Shown here: one piece after another, positions 23,144 to 26,100 of the stretch
How positions within the stretch are numbered: position 1 is the first letter of the stretch
Layout: every line of letters starts with the position of its first letter
NCBI GenBank assembly: GCA_004764695.1
Contig: SMSO01000014.1
Coordinates: 57,648 to 121,647, forward strand
Source of the DNA: Schizochytrium sp. TIO01
Lineage: Eukaryota; Protista; Bigyra: Labyrinthulomycetes
DNA length: 64,000 nt
Direction: 5' to 3'
The notes under the pieces: model-generated
What the model was told of the DNA's origin: nothing
Database searches by the model: none
What the model saw: the letters and a program-made list of their open reading frames with translations, nothing else
Translations under genes and position numbers: made by a program

Positions 23144-26100
23144 ATGACTACGGCACGTAGAATTGAGGACATCAAAGGAGATACGACGAAGATATAGTAA
23201 GTGCACGATGGAGAAAGGAGGAGAAAGAAGAAGGAGGCATCGCGTCGTCGATGTGTTGTAGTAGTCAGCTTTCTAGAAGAAGAATAGTTTTGAACTAGTA
23301 GTGGCACTCATGAAGAAGTTGGAAATGGCATATACTTACTCTCACTTGTTCACAAACAAACAAACAAACAAACAAACACAGTCTTGGTTGCAACAGGCTT
23401 GGCGATGAGGGCGCAAAGGCCGTCGCAAAGGCACTCGAGGGATGCAAGAACCTTCAAACTTTACAGTACGTTTGTGGAATCATCCACGAGGGAAAGCTAT
23501 CGTAATAGTCAGGACCAAGCTTTTTCTTTCTTTCTTTTTAGTGCTTGGTGTTTGTAGTACTGCTGGTACACTACCTAAGTAGTTTACGTAGTTGGGTACG
23601 CAAAGAAAGGCAAAGAAGTCTTTTCTTTTTTACAAAGAGAAGAAGGAAATCTATATAATTTGATAGGCAGCAGCAGCAGAAGAAGAGGTGATTGCTTTTT
23701 ATTGTGCGGAAAAACAAAACAAAACAGGATCAACTGACTGGACCTGTCTTTCCTGACAACGAATGAACAAAACAAACTTATTCATTTATACTCACAGTCT
23801 TCTGGGGAACAACATTGGCTCGGAGGGCGCAAAGGCCGTCGCAAAGGCACTCGAGGGATGCAAGAACCTTCAGACTTTAGAGTACGTTTGTGGAATCATC
23901 CACGAGGGAAAGCTATCGTAATAGTCAGGACCAAGCTTTTTCTTTCTTTGTTTTGAGTGCTTGGTGTTTGTAGTACTGCTGGTACACTACCTAAGTAGTT
24001 TACGTAGTTGGGTACGCAAAGAAAGGCAAAGAAGTCTTTTCTTTTTTACAAAGAGAAGAAGGAAATCTATATAATTTGATAGGCAGCCAGCAGCAGAAGA
24101 AGAAGAGCTGATTGCTTTTTATTGTGAGAAAAAACAAAACAAAACAGGATCAACTGACTGGACCTGTCTTTCCTGACAACGAATGAACAAAACAAACTTA
24201 TTCATTTATACTCACAGTCTTCGTAGCAACAACTTTGGCGATGAGGGCGCAAAGGCCGTCGCAAAGGCACTCGAGGGATGCAAGAACCTGACTCATCTGA
24301 AGTACGTTTGTGGAATCATCCACGAGGGAAAGCTATCGTAATAGTCAGGACCAAGCTTTTTCTTTCTTTCTTTTTAGTGCTTGGTGTTTGTAGTACTGCT
24401 GGTACACTACCTAAGTAGTTTACGTAGTTGGGTACGCAAAGAAAGGCAAAGAAGTCTTTTCTTTTTTACAAAGAGAAGAACGAAATCTATAGAATTTGAT
24501 AGGCAGCAGCAGAAGCAGAAGAAGAGGTGATTGGTTTTTATTGTGAGGTAAAACAAAACAAAACAGGATCAACTGACTGGACCTGTCTTTCCTGACAACG
24601 AATGAACAAAACAAACTTATTCATTTATACTCACAGTCTTGGTTGGAACAACATTGGCTCGGAGGGCGCAAAGGCCGTCGCAAAGGCACTCGAGGGATGC
24701 AAGAACCTTCAACAATTGTAGTACGTTTGTGGAATCATCCACGAGGGAAAGCTATCGTAATAGTCAGGACCAAGCTTTTTCTTTCTTTGTTTTGAGTGCT
24801 TGGTGTTTGTAGTACTGCTGGTACACTACCTAAGTAGTTTACGTAGTTGGGTACGCAAAGAAAGGCAAAGAAGTCTTTTCTTTTTTACAAATATAATTTG
24901 ATAGGCAGCAGCAGCAGCAGAAGAAGAGGTGATTGCTTTTTATTGTGAGGAAAAACAAAACAAAATAGGATCAACTGACTGGACCTGTCTTTCCTGACAA
25001 CGAATGAACAAAACAAACTTATTCATTTATACTCACAGTCTTCAGTTGAACAAGATTGGCTCAGAGGGCGCAAAGGCCGTCGCAAAGGCACTCGAGGGAT
25101 GCAAGAACCTGACTCGTCTTGGGTACGTTTGTGGAATCATCCACGAGGGAAAGCTATCGTAATAGTCAGGACGGACCAAGCTTTTTCTTTCTTTCTTTTG
25201 AGTGCTTGGTGTTTGTAGTACTGCTGGTACACTACCTAAGTAGTTTACGTAGTTGGGTACGCAAAGAAAGGCAAAGAAGTCTTTTCTTTTTTACAAATAT
25301 AATTTGATAGGCAGCAGCAGCAGAAGAAGAGCTGATTGCTTTTTATTTTGCGGAAAAACAAAACAAAACAGGATCAACTGACTGGACCTGTCTTTCCTGA
25401 CAACGAATCAACAAAACAAACTTATTCATTTATACTCACAGTCTTGAGGATAACAACATTGACGATGAGGGCGCGAAGGCCGTCGCAAAGTCTCTGCACA
25501 AAGCATGTCCTTCTGTTCAAATCTAGTAAGTTCCGTTCCCTCTGCTGCTATTCCCAGCTTGCGCAGAGCCTTGCCTTCGCTGGTTCTCTCCACCTCTCCA
25601 TATGGACTTCCGAGGCCGTCTTTAGATGCGTTCATCGTTTTTCTAACAAGCGCTTTTATTCTCTTTCTTTCGTTCATTGATTTATCAAATGCAGCTATGA
25701 CAAATGTTATGCAACTCCTAAACAATTGTTCGAAAGGATGTGTTCTCCTGGAGAGGACATTGCATATTTCTCGTCAGAGCTCGATTCCTATGCTTCCATA
25801 GAGGCGTCAGAAAACGAGCCTTCTGCAGAGCCCAAGAACGAGCAAGACGGCACTGATGGCGCCGGGCTTGCTACTTTGGATGGATCTGGGTAAGTTCATG
25901 CGGTCAGTCTTTGTTTGGGATTGTGGTCATTCATTCCACGAACTGTGTTGTTGAGATAGAGGGAAATCCTAACTTTTGCTTCTGCTTCTGCTGCTACTTC
26001 AACATCACTTTGTTCGTTTGTTTACGTCTTTTTGTTCACCTCAGAGATTTGACGGATAGAGCGAACGTGCGTTTCGCTAATGTGGTGCGGCTTGCCAAGG

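Follow-up and report, generated by a model that had tools for sequence, protein, structure and literature searches.

In lampreys and hagfish, the VLRs combine an LRR scaffold of invariant framework with hypervariable residues on the concave face and draw on many cassettes that are flanked by common sequence. Their somatic assembly starts from a germline gene that is incomplete and proceeds by a deaminase-linked, gene-conversion-like process. LRR proteins of the ribonuclease-inhibitor (RI) and NLR type are known for their exon-per-repeat structure. In Tetrahymena, genes with one LRR per exon have an exact exon length of 90 nt, more than 96% phase-2 introns and a junction codon made by two exons, and exon and intron together are the unit that is repeated at the nucleotide level. 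These genes are enriched in subtelomeres, some are fused to kinases, and unequal crossing-over has been proposed for them; they number thousands, are tied to a LINE-like element and to the ciliate nuclear dimorphism, and their authors consider the category to have arisen once, in Tetrahymena. Brown algae harbor LRR-ROCO and LRR-kinase genes in which every LRR is coded by a phase-2 exon of its own, of constant length (Zambounis 2012, PMC3341825; Teng 2024, PMC11378527), the exons being 72 nt long and the LRRs comprising 24 residues (PMC11378527). Exon order is not conserved between the paralogs and the concave face is under positive selection; they are candidate immune receptors (PMC3341825; PMC11378527). 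Shuffling was absent from the LRR-kinases of Ectocarpus (PMC3341825). From a different perspective, LORE-TEARS repeats have been described in Aurantiochytrium limacinum, among them Group 5, a unit of ~421 bp present in about 5 copies between consecutive 5S genes (Collier et al., bioRxiv 10.1101/2023.06.15.545109). They were read as non-coding spacer that would contribute to telomere/rDNA maintenance, and had no similarity to GenBank sequences (bioRxiv 10.1101/2023.06.15.545109).

The array of Schizochytrium sp. TIO01 described here is a variant of the one-LRR-per-exon shuffling known from brown algae and Tetrahymena, and adds a third independent eukaryotic lineage in which phase-2 arrays of this kind build fast-evolving receptor families. 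With the brown-alga system it shares the stramenopile host, the LRR per exon, the symmetric phase 2 and an exon content and order that differ between paralogs. However, its exons have 84 nt (28-residue RI type) instead of 72 nt, and the ROC-COR GTPase of the main shuffled brown-alga family was not detected by Pfam in the downstream part of the gene product. Neither an intron/core identity of ~98% throughout the genome nor a link to rDNA or chromosome ends was found reported in PMC3341825 or PMC11378527, as far as these were searched. All the features of the Tetrahymena genes named above recur here except the 90-nt exon length, the thousands of genes, the LINE-like element and the nuclear dimorphism, and the stramenopile array is a parallel case. 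The invariant LRR framework with a hypervariable concave face and the many cassettes between common sequences resemble the VLRs, but here a complete, open gene is already present in the germline and no joints are listed in the DNA run. With RI/NLR-type LRRs the array has in common the 28-residue repeat with LxxLxLxxNxIGxxGAxxLAxAL, a location predicted to be cytosolic and exons whose boundaries keep the register of the repeats. It differs from them by the absence of NACHT/NB-ARC, by a kinase and an RBR-like tail as output domains, and by repeats that are near-clonal in their DNA.

The window, i.e., the whole stretch of 64,000 nucleotides that was analyzed, covers 57.6-121.6 kb of its contig and is subtelomeric. 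Its features relevant here are the following.

10389-15901 and 43261-48776: rDNA units
21770-21888, + strand: upstream 5S rRNA gene, first of the bracketing pair (Rfam RF00001, 96.5 bits)
23144-23196, + strand: exon 1, ATG, 17 codons and 2 nt, GTAAGT donor (model open across all exons)
23377-25490, + strand: tandem array of exon+intron units (Tandem Repeats Finder: period 420, 5.1 copies, 92% matches)
23382-23465, + strand: LRR exon 1 (84 nt, phase 2), position-specific "first" type, acceptor AAACACAG (LRR_6 E=8e-4)
23798-23881, + strand: LRR exon 2 (84 nt, phase 2; LRR_6 E=9e-3)
24218-24301, + strand: LRR exon 3 (84 nt, phase 2; LRR_6 E=1.7e-4), joint at 24301 in RNA-like contigs
24637-24720, + strand: LRR exon 4 (84 nt, phase 2), joints at 24637 and 24720 in RNA-like contigs
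25039-25122, + strand: LRR exon 5 (84 nt, phase 2), joints ending at 25039, with GT..AG
25442-25525, + strand: LRR exon 6 (84 nt, phase 2), terminal type …AKSLHKACPSVQI, GTAAGT donor (LRR_6 E=2e-3); RNA-like contigs depart from the genome exactly at 25525
23466-23797, 23882-24217, 24302-24636, 24721-25038 and 25123-25441, + strand: the five array introns, 318-336 nt each, GT..AG (intron-only bins with about zero depth in RNA-like runs)
25695-25889, + strand: exon 8, 195 nt, acidic linker without domain match (open model)
26045-28733, + strand: exon 9, 2689 nt, with helical region, kinase and Cys/His-rich tail, stop codon at its end (Pkinase E=5e-27)
about 27327-27866, + strand: protein kinase domain in exon 9 (Pkinase E=5e-27; solved kinases down to E=2e-14)
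about 27999-28532, + strand: Cys/His-rich RBR-like tail in exon 9 (RBR/IBR atlas scores 0.88-0.90, rated as a lead)
32368-32486, + strand: downstream 5S rRNA gene, second of the bracketing pair (Rfam RF00001, 97 bits)

An earlier note, made from the letters of this DNA, had claimed six 84-nt phase-2 exons in units of 402-420 bp, and all of them were recovered at their places and with this exact length. They span 23382-25525 on the + strand, each codes for one 28-residue RI-type LRR, and the successive exon+intron units measure 416, 420, 419, 402, and 403 bp. AG precedes all six exons, the donor is GTACGT after the first five and GTAAGT after the last one, and the codon split between neighboring LRR exons consists of the two terminal nt of one and the first T of the next. 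The core that had been noted as nucleotide-identical in five exons is 47 nt long and has exact copies at 23407, 23823, 24243, 24662, and 25064, with no further exact copy on either strand of the window; LRR exon 6 departs from it after ...GTCGCAAAG. The differing β-strand peptides at the junctions were likewise all found again (Y-LGCNRL, QTLH-LLGNNI, QTLD-LRSNNF, THLN-LGWNNI, QQLY-LQLNKI, and TRLG-LEDNNI). Every exon reads L-x-x-N-x-I-G-x-E-G-A-K-A-V-A-K-A-L-E-G-C-K-N-L-x-x-L, which together with the split codon gives 28 residues and agrees with the definition of RI-type LRRs (a period of 28-29 residues, and a helix-forming segment after LxxLxLxxN/CxL). Single LRR exons reach 16.4-21.8 bits with Pfam LRR_6 (PF13516; E 1.7e-4 to 9e-3) at a gathering cut-off of 23.4, and no Rfam match lies inside the array.

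The LRR exons fit into a gene model of nine exons with a CDS of 3441 nt (1146 aa), a single, terminal stop codon and GT-AG at all introns. Pfam returned only kinase families for the 898-aa downstream part, and the search of solved structures with the kinase returned generic Ser/Thr kinases without a finer subfamily. The Cys/His-rich tail may represent a putative RBR-type ubiquitin ligase; its Pfam RING/IBR matches were not significant (E about 9), and a single-sequence structure model of it had a mean pLDDT of 43.6, too low for use. Neither a signal peptide nor a transmembrane segment was found in the predicted protein. Judged together with the explanation of the whole locus given below, the gene product can with fair confidence be assumed to be a cytosolic receptor-like protein in which six RI-type LRRs are combined with a linker, a helical region, the Ser/Thr kinase and the Cys/His-rich tail. 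In scans of metagenomes the exon core had no exact counterpart, and kinases matched only distantly, with 24-33% identity. Relatives of 59% identity were observed in other organisms (P0001-P0003).

For transcription, the contigs of one DNA run were compared with those of three runs that stem from three studies and are presumed to be RNA. Intron-only bins had a depth of 0-1.2 in the probable RNA runs and the adjoining exon bins hundreds to thousands, whereas for these intron bins the DNA run gave a depth of 422-1072, with no joints among those listed. At least 15 joints in the probable RNA contigs fall exactly on exon ends or starts, several with GT..AG and some with other variable letters between them; the contigs are short, no single one spans both the LRR array and the kinase, and most of the joints must stem from paralogs. 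One loose end joins a paralog's copy of exon 1 straight to the LRR exon start at 24637, another contig departs at 25889 and resumes at 26045 with the sequence as it occurs in a paralog, and two stretches of exon 9, 26681-26826 and 27524-27647, are matched without a mismatch. The six 84-nt units are real exons, apparently spliced, of a gene that ends in the kinase exon, as the earlier note had supposed. Exon content and order differ among the paralogous arrays according to their listings. Therefore, neither of the two findings that the note had named against itself was made, namely exons that are not spliced to the kinase exon, or six exons identical in kind and order in all genomic copies.

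The genome-wide count of the intron suggested in that note revealed at least 330 copies with 95-100% identity, distributed over about 40 paralogous arrays instead of a single locus. About 40-50 paralogous LRR-kinase genes reside in rDNA/5S blocks at chromosome ends, many of the arrays 10-80 kb from contig ends. The genome contains 51 matches to the kinase, 42 of them with 82-100% amino-acid identity and mostly open, and the arrays of 37 paralogs hold between 2 and about 36 exons, with a median of 8. All paralogs share exon cores and introns of ~98% identity, in contrast to flanks that differ by 5-24% (identity of 86-95% in the 3′ part of the gene and 76-95% in the 5′ flank), and introns are nearly as similar between arrays (97.9%) as within them (98.35%). 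The exons at both ends of an array belong to position-specific types, the terminal type of LRR exon 6 closing the arrays of paralogs as well, which fits the expectation for array edges under unequal exchange. An introner or transposon as origin of the intron was considered and rejected, because the copies are always tandem and occupy the same phase-2 position in the same exon type.

The same window contains a 385-bp array, to which the intron of the 420-bp array has only chance matches of ≤13 nt in blastn, which agrees with the dissimilarity noted before. It comprises nine 84-nt phase-2 exons whose variable sites are the split codon and repeat positions 2, 3, 5, and 8; exon length and phase are indeed the same in both families and variable β-strand positions recur in both, but 25-26 do not vary there. 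Since the introns are dissimilar and the copies of either family, hundreds in number, are 95-100% identical, a homogenization of the 420-bp family independent of the 385-bp family is supported by these comparisons. A second homogenized array was thus rightly recognized, whereas the conclusion drawn from it, the same diversification mechanism acting as a general system, is not supported in this wording: nothing points to a dedicated mechanism, and the data fit unequal crossing-over, patchy gene conversion between chromosome ends and selection, all of them ordinary processes of evolution.

For a catalog of exons, 30 loci were merged into 15 arrays (of about 40) with 104 exons. Splice sites are invariant in these arrays, and 80/104 exons have exactly 84 nt at an intron length of 315-350 nt. 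Of the 104, 24 are out of frame; these cluster in the longest arrays and have their indels at variable sites, and if they are real, a part of the family is decayed or a mere cassette store. This clustering could also point to an assembly or consensus artifact of collapsed long-read repeats, the more so as some of these exons look like mixed calls of the position-8 codon, e.g., GAT + TCG giving GATCGG. As an explanation of the variability, however, such an artifact is very improbable: all six exons of the window itself are in frame, short-read-derived contigs of several independent studies cover the array with 95-100% identity and one differing site (23519), they carry the same kinds of variable islands beside the same core, and a collapse would erase variable sites rather than create them.

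Among 88 aligned units of 15 arrays, nucleotide diversity amounts to 0.5-0.7 at exon positions 5-10, 23-25, and 73-84, compared to 0.00-0.04 at positions 26-72 and a mean of 0.02 in the intron. This contrast of the variable exon positions with core and intron is far beyond chance. Of 67 internal exons, 66 are distinct, and 57 have an identical core. Repeat positions 2, 3, 5, 8, 25, and 26 are the only ones with an amino-acid entropy above 1.3 bits, and the split codon (repeat position 28) encodes eight different amino acids. Variation is therewith limited to the x positions of LxxLxLxxNxL (25, 26, 28, 2, 3, and 5) and position 8, and these codons are predicted to specify ligand-contact or solvent-exposed positions of the LRR. 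Position 8 is essentially a D/S dimorphism with all three bases differing. Leu24 and Leu27 are invariant, yet their codons differ in 40% and 67% of exon pairs, respectively, a share that is 0-6% among the codons of the core. Two haplotype classes (42 vs. 16 exons) make up the 3′ variable block; they are in near-complete linkage and include synonymous differences.

The earlier note had also proposed to look for shuffling, and this is what the arrays display: related arrays are mosaics with breakpoints inside the identical core, the two variable blocks separated by 47 nt show linkage equilibrium (Fisher p=0.55), and recently duplicated arrays agree in variable blocks one and two of an exon but not in the third. 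A purely neutral explanation was rejected, since the intron sets the neutral level of diversity at about 0.02. From the diversity pattern alone we infer selection on the binding face. The most plausible explanation of the locus, which we regard as probable, is an LRR-kinase gene family in concerted evolution by exchange, with selection that keeps diversity. Unequal crossing-over and short-patch gene conversion would be frequent within arrays and between chromosome ends, with the identical core and intron serving as homology and the short variable islands being moved about as cassettes. Balancing or diversifying selection for recognition diversity would protect the islands from homogenization, and the concave LRR face might bind a variable, perhaps non-self, ligand and signal via the kinase and the ligase-like tail.

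Alternatively, a mutational hot spot at the variable islands, caused by error-prone repair, slippage or G-quadruplex-prone sequence, could generate the diversity with selection in a minor role. Deviations from the consensus are about 35 times as frequent at variable sites as at intron sites (39.7 vs. 1.1%), indels per nucleotide are ~2x as frequent at variable sites as in introns of the sampled units, the first variable island has acquired two in-frame G-rich insertions besides indels, and synonymous sites of the 3′ island are polymorphic as well. However, the two tightly linked 3′ haplotype classes and the D/S dimorphism look like old lineages and not like continuous random mutation, which argues against fresh targeted mutation. 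Moreover, a sequence-driven hot spot would not predict the exact coincidence with solvent-exposed LRR positions, only 2/67 internal in-frame exons contain stop codons, and the changes are not confined to one base type with a DGR-like adenine signature, so that we consider this hot spot quite unlikely. A DGR proper was rejected, as all four bases occur in the variable islands and the consensus positions are not adenines; neither a template copy nor an RT gene is found beside the array in the ORF list.

Exchange as the source of the mosaics raises the question of its pace. It could be a programmed or high-frequency mitotic process, with the identical core and intron as a scaffold kept for this purpose, by which single cells or clones would keep rebuilding their LRR arrays out of the about 40 copies at chromosome ends. 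Such a process would be comparable to VSG/var-type switching or VLR-like assembly and would make receptors differ from cell to cell. The subtelomeric site with many arrays near contig ends, units as alike between chromosomes as between neighbors, mosaic patches that break in the core, widely variable array sizes, and long arrays rich in out-of-frame exons as possible silent donors would all agree with it. Against this stand the complete and open germline gene of the window, unlike the incomplete VLR gene, the DNA run without listed joints across the array, a locus to which no recombinase or deaminase is linked, and the resemblance of the out-of-frame exons to consensus artifacts. Furthermore, exchange on evolutionary time scales explains all observations equally well, and no evidence of a dedicated or somatic diversification machinery was found in the array and contig data. 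We therefore regard programmed exchange as unlikely. The same doubt applies to the specific notion that cells exchange LRR cassettes among the about 40-50 chromosome-end genes during vegetative growth, on a maintained core/intron scaffold, for which we would give only a small chance. If true, it would provide a continually renewed, clonally variable repertoire of intracellular receptors, a functional parallel to anticipatory immunity that might target resident mirusviruses.

With the probable reading, concerted evolution under diversity-keeping selection, the array is an unusually clean case, since framework and introns are ~98% identical genome-wide and the binding-face codons nearly saturated. 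The family is present at every rDNA-bearing chromosome end, and the host is culturable, genetically modifiable and carries persistent mirusviruses; for A. limacinum, knock-out lines are listed by Collier et al., together with Nanopore runs of the wild type and of two knock-outs (bioRxiv 10.1101/2023.06.15.545109). Therefore, non-self recognition by unicellular eukaryotes, a long-standing question, becomes directly testable.

The 420-bp array also matches LORE-TEARS Group 5, by layout, unit size and copy number and not by sequence comparison: the unit has 420 vs. ~421 bp, the copies number 5.1 vs. about 5, and both are flanked by two 5S genes in a subtelomeric rDNA block. In contrast to a non-coding spacer, the unit consists here of exon and intron of an LRR-kinase gene, with an open nine-exon model, LRR_6 and kinase domains and joints in RNA-like contigs. 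The terms LRR, leucine, and kinase are absent from the text of that preprint, in which "exon" is used only for density plots. That the repeat is primarily a non-coding element of chromosome ends, with an incidental reading frame, would be in line with its regular place between 5S genes, the lack of GenBank similarity reported by Collier et al. and the occurrence of some intron sequence in RNA-like runs. This is extremely improbable, and as sole explanation the non-coding reading is already contradicted: the exon length is kept at 84 nt while that of the intron varies, splice sites are invariant, the gene with its domains is open and has exon-exon joints, the kinase frames are intact in about 40 paralogs, and variation falls exactly on the LRR surface positions. 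A role at the DNA level may exist beside coding. Other arrays of the window match LORE-TEARS Group 0 (385 bp, about 9 copies), Group 1 (about 406-414 bp, 4 copies), and Group 2 (about 361-366 bp). A published genome feature can thereby be re-read, at least two LORE-TEARS classes probably being exon-intron modules of expressed receptor-like genes.

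The LRR-kinase gene of the window has nine exons in our model, six of which are LRR exons found by reading the sequence of 22800-25900 and by pattern scan:

23144-23196, +, ATG exon (gene model)
23382-23465, +, LRR exon 1, 84 nt (sequence reading, pattern scan)
23798-23881, +, LRR exon 2, 84 nt (sequence reading, pattern scan)
24218-24301, +, LRR exon 3, 84 nt (sequence reading, pattern scan)
24637-24720, +, LRR exon 4, 84 nt (sequence reading, pattern scan)
25039-25122, +, LRR exon 5, 84 nt (sequence reading, pattern scan)
25442-25525, +, LRR exon 6, 84 nt (sequence reading, pattern scan)
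25695-25889, +, 195-nt exon at the linker position (gene model)
26045-28733, +, last exon, 2689 nt (gene model)

Joined in silico, these exons form a frame of 3441 nt (1146 codons) with one stop, which is terminal, and every intron is GT-AG. All six LRR exons are preceded by ...CACAG and followed by a GTACGT donor, which is replaced by GTAAGT after the sixth. Translation from the second base gives 27 residues, L-x-x-N-x-I-G-x-E-G-A-K-A-V-A-K-A-L-E-G-C-K-N-L-x-x-L, and the 28th codon consists of the final two bases of the exon and the initial T of the next one. Since this codon is split across the exon junction, the array introns are in phase 2 on both sides. The junction peptides read in the earlier note are all correct in the joined gene model, and the 47-nt core it reported in five exons occurs exactly five times across the 64-kb window, always at array exons. 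Tandem Repeats Finder gives a period of 420 with 5.1 copies and 92% matches for 23377-25490; the unit spacings are 416, 420, 419, 402, and 403 bp. Introns 4 (24721-25038) and 5 (25123-25441) have a rare short form in common, which is 318-319 nt long and lacks about 17 nt. Introns of 315-318 nt account for 3 of 88 sampled and are almost absent from the other sampled arrays, and the short form marks a local event, a duplication or conversion that involved adjacent units.

Matches to the region were present in 24 public runs from 12 studies, none of them recorded as RNA and 18 guessed to be RNA. Three RNA-like runs from three studies, labelled as RNA by guess, and one probable DNA run were compared over 23100-28800. 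In the intron-only bin 23864-24054 the depth was 1.17, 0.6, and 0.17 in the RNA-like runs versus 1072 in the DNA run, and in the intron-only bin 24437-24627 it was 0 in all three versus 422; adjoining exon-containing bins reached hundreds to thousands in the RNA-like runs. Moreover, the RNA-like runs contain at least 15 joints leading from the last bases of one exon to the first bases of another, including 24301->25039 and 24720->25442, both GT..AG, whereas no exon-exon joints were found in the DNA run over this region. Other joints have TCTT followed by another six-base island between their two sides and are thus exon-exon junctions of a paralog. Contigs of the RNA-like runs depart from the genome sequence exactly at 25525 and 25889, and the contig departing at 25889 goes on into the sequence at 26045 in the form found in a paralog. 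The kinase exon is covered at 26681-26826 and 27524-27647 with zero mismatches, and therefore the window copy or a near-identical one is transcribed. Some intron sequence (23465-23679) is also present, a paralog's first exon is fused directly to an LRR exon start as a loose end, and no single molecule across both LRR array and kinase was seen among the short contigs. With these joints and the open nine-exon frame, the array exons appear to be spliced, as the earlier note had supposed, judged from short contigs of runs whose RNA status is guessed.

The gene belongs to an extensive family. Across the genome, the sequence of the first array intron (23466-23797) recurs in at least 330 matches with 95-100% identity; these are spread over at least 18 contigs, in many cases within 10-80 kb of contig ends. 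The 898-aa part downstream of the array has 51 genome matches, 42 of them with 82-100% amino-acid identity and most of them open, with frames of about 925 codons. In 37 paralogs with paired 5' and 3' flanks the array spans correspond to between 2 and about 36 exons, with a median of 8. Paralogous arrays differ in exon content and order, and neither case named in the earlier note as refuting (exons left unspliced to the kinase exon, or the same six exons in the same order in all copies) is seen. Two paralogs of the source genome (C24:318-6717 and C32:2889854-2896251) have identical flank-to-flank array spans of 2711 bp and identical hit offsets; either a single locus that entered the assembly twice or a segmental duplication of very recent date might explain this.

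Variation was catalogued in 15 arrays, with 104 exons sampled and 88 units aligned. The array introns are 98.35% identical within arrays versus 97.9% between arrays on different contigs (88 units, 15 arrays). Paralogs are 86-95% identical in the 3.2 kb downstream of the array, with 75-80% in non-repeat introns of some copies, and 76-95% identical in 5' UTR, exon 1, and intron 1. Since the flanks have diverged but the units are alike, the repeat units were kept alike after gene divergence. The array units, as judged from these comparisons, are evidently under concerted evolution that is confined to the array. The first LRR exon is marked by its AAACACAG acceptor and by unusual residues at positions 4-5, the last one by …KSLHKACPSV.I and the GTAAGT donor; both are position-specific types common to paralogs, as would be expected if unequal exchange homogenises array interiors and not edges.

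Diversity within the units is concentrated at a few sites. Across the 88 units, exon positions 5-10 have a per-site nucleotide diversity of 0.52-0.71, positions 23-25 of 0.55, and positions 73-84 of 0.3-0.66 (except position 81 with 0.05); at positions 26-72 it is 0.00-0.04, with an intron mean of 0.02. Differences from the consensus amount to 39.7% at variable sites versus 1.1% in the intron. Among 67 in-frame internal exons, 66 sequences are distinct; the six-base first island occurs in 45 versions and the 3' block in 33, and the 45-nt core is identical in 57. Amino-acid entropy exceeds 1.3 bits only at repeat positions 2, 3, 5, 8, 25, and 26, the split codon (position 28) encodes eight amino acids (D, N, Y, G, S, H, V, A), and the remaining positions are nearly invariant (at most 0.91 bits). 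In the LxxLxLxxNxL motif, x stands for positions 25, 26, 28, 2, 3, and 5, and these residues make the solvent-exposed concave beta-sheet of LRR proteins. In brown-alga ROCO genes, the concave beta-sheet face was found to be under positive selection (Zambounis 2012, PMC3341825; Teng 2024, PMC11378527).

The position-8 codon is dimorphic (GAT versus TCG/TCA) and in linkage equilibrium with the 3' block 47 nt apart (Fisher p=0.55). The 3' block itself forms two haplotype classes in near-complete linkage, T-CAA-T in 42 exons and G-ACT-C in 16. The codons of the invariant leucines 24 and 27 differ in 40% and 67% of exon pairs, respectively, those of the core in 0-6%. Because synonymous differences co-vary with replacement differences next to them, the 3' block variants indicate old cassette lineages that escaped homogenisation rather than new point mutations. 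Furthermore, mosaics are present in two pairs of arrays that were duplicated recently: the first island and position-8 codon of an exon can match the counterpart while the 3' block differs, and the following exon matches again. One of these pairs differs by 18.8% at variable sites, 1.8% in array introns, and 4.9% in the 5' flank. Such mosaics bear the signature of short conversion patches ending in the identical core or intron.

Genome and runs together show that the multigene family is expressed, that its concerted evolution is limited to the array, that copy number has changed, that cassettes form mosaics, and that diversity is restricted to the predicted binding face. The probable cause is exchange both inside chromosome ends and from one end to another, by unequal crossing-over and by gene conversion in patches, for which identical core and intron would serve as homology while the three short variable islands per exon are reshuffled. 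Conversion carries the islands along with their flanks and alone is insufficient for the ~30-fold higher diversity at the islands; either selection in favour of binding faces that differ or a hot spot of mutation at these sites is needed. The islands coincide with structural ligand-contact positions and show old-haplotype structure, and for these two reasons we favour selection as the probable source.

Off-length exons make up 24 of the 104 sampled (82-99 nt versus 84) and cluster in the longest arrays of the source genome G000, C7:1067775-1077892, C23:31954-36969, and C12:15672-19848 (sampled loci L002-L030). The indels of these exons fall on the variable islands, and in some of them the position-8 codon looks like merged alleles (GATCGG, TCGATG). 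Alternatively to assembly artefacts, they would be real pseudo-exons or silent donor cassettes beside intact kinase frames; most are probably consensus errors of the long-read assembly.

The last exon encodes a kinase domain (Pfam Pkinase, E=5e-27), and a solved-structure search with this part returned generic Ser/Thr kinases only. When Pfam was run on each LRR exon separately, each matched LRR_6 (ribonuclease-inhibitor (RI) type) with E-values of 1.7e-4 to 9e-3; the scores are under the gathering score because, in register, a lone exon falls short of one full repeat of the model. The protein has no signal peptide and no hydrophobic segment (19-residue hydropathy maximum 1.2, within the kinase domain) and is therefore predicted to be cytosolic. 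As a lead, its Cys/His-rich tail resembles RBR/IBR ubiquitin ligases (atlas scores 0.88-0.90; Pfam E about 9); a single-sequence AlphaFold model of the tail has a pLDDT of 43.6, too low for use. The protein is most likely a cytosolic sensor, whose LRR face would bind a variable ligand and signal via the kinase and a possible E3-ligase tail. Among named relatives of the kinase part, the best is a protein of the thraustochytrid Hondaea, at 40% identity. This Hondaea fermentalgiana relative, P0004, shares the kinase chassis but has N-terminal ankyrin repeats where the window gene has LRR exons. The difference points to swapping of sensor domains among thraustochytrids, with the kinase/Cys-rich output module conserved, and fits a modular sensor-plus-output design.

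The window harbors a second RI-type LRR family:

53124-56307, -, nine 84-nt phase-2 exons of the 385-bp array

These exons read LxxNxIGxEGxKAVxAALKENRSLTSL (…AAALKENRSLTSL). The intron has at least 400 genome copies with 95-100% identity and is without similarity to the 420-bp intron, which bears out the claim of two dissimilar intron families. Exon length and phase are equal in both arrays, as had been stated, and the claimed sharing of variable positions holds for 2, 3, 5, 8, and the split codon but not for 25-26, which are constant here. The general diversification system proposed in the earlier note thus stands as a recurring pattern of evolution in this genome, with no evidence for a dedicated machine.

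Both arrays lie among rRNA genes:

10389-15901, -, complete 28S-5.8S-18S unit (Rfam)
43261-48776, -, complete 28S-5.8S-18S unit (Rfam)
21770, 32368, 57141, +, three 5S genes (Rfam)
38883-42483 and 58071, five tRNA genes

The window begins 57.6 kb from the contig start in a genome of 64 Mb and 37 contigs. Its two rDNA blocks are ~32.9 kb apart, which means that an rDNA/LRR-gene block is duplicated at this chromosome end.

One-LRR-per-exon phase-2 arrays that evolve by exon shuffling are known from brown algae, with 72-nt exons in ROCO GTPases and some kinases (PMC3341825; PMC11378527). They are also known from Tetrahymena, with exons of exactly 90 bp and units of about 347 bp; the Tetrahymena arrays are subtelomeric, some with kinase domains, and their authors considered the category unique to Tetrahymena. 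The window family is a variant of such arrays. It differs from both by its 84-nt exons with RI-type repeats, its kinase and RBR-like tail as outputs, its embedding in rDNA/5S blocks at chromosome ends, and a much sharper contrast between clonal framework and saturated contact codons. The gene stands apart from the named classes because the defining features of each fail: it has no ROC-COR and is not a ROCO gene, the exon length (84 nt versus exactly 90 bp) rules out the Tetrahymena class, the complete germline gene rules out VLR-type assembly, and the array lacks the defining features of a DGR.

In Aurantiochytrium limacinum, chromosomes have TTAGG telomeres and rDNA at nearly all ends, with spacer repeats named LORE-TEARS, which according to the preprint resemble nothing in GenBank and may help to maintain chromosome ends (Collier et al., bioRxiv 10.1101/2023.06.15.545109). 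The window has a matching layout. In Group 5, a ~421-bp unit present about 5 times separates two consecutive 5S genes; Group 0 consists of about 9 ~385-bp units between the 18S gene and the nearest 5S (same preprint). By layout, not by sequence comparison, the 420-bp array fits Group 5 and the 385-bp array (53107-56483) fits Group 0. The words "LRR," "leucine," and "kinase" are absent from the preprint text (bioRxiv 10.1101/2023.06.15.545109), and the term LORE-TEARS was not found in the literature searched beyond it. Reading the 420-bp array as LRR-kinase exons is thus a re-annotation of a published repeat. Two further tandem arrays of the window match by size and by position 3' of 28S, 5706-6537 (361 bp, 2.3 copies) Group 2 and 7731-9382 (414 bp, 4.0 copies) Group 1. 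Finally, two exons (G000 C30:72751-76085 and C5:1820252-1823586, loci L014 and L015) are lengthened to 96 and 99 nt by G-rich insertions (12 and 15 nt, in frame) in the first variable island, which encode a Gly-rich loop. These G-quadruplex-like insertions may be linked to the G-quadruplex predictions for LORE-TEARS (bioRxiv 10.1101/2023.06.15.545109).
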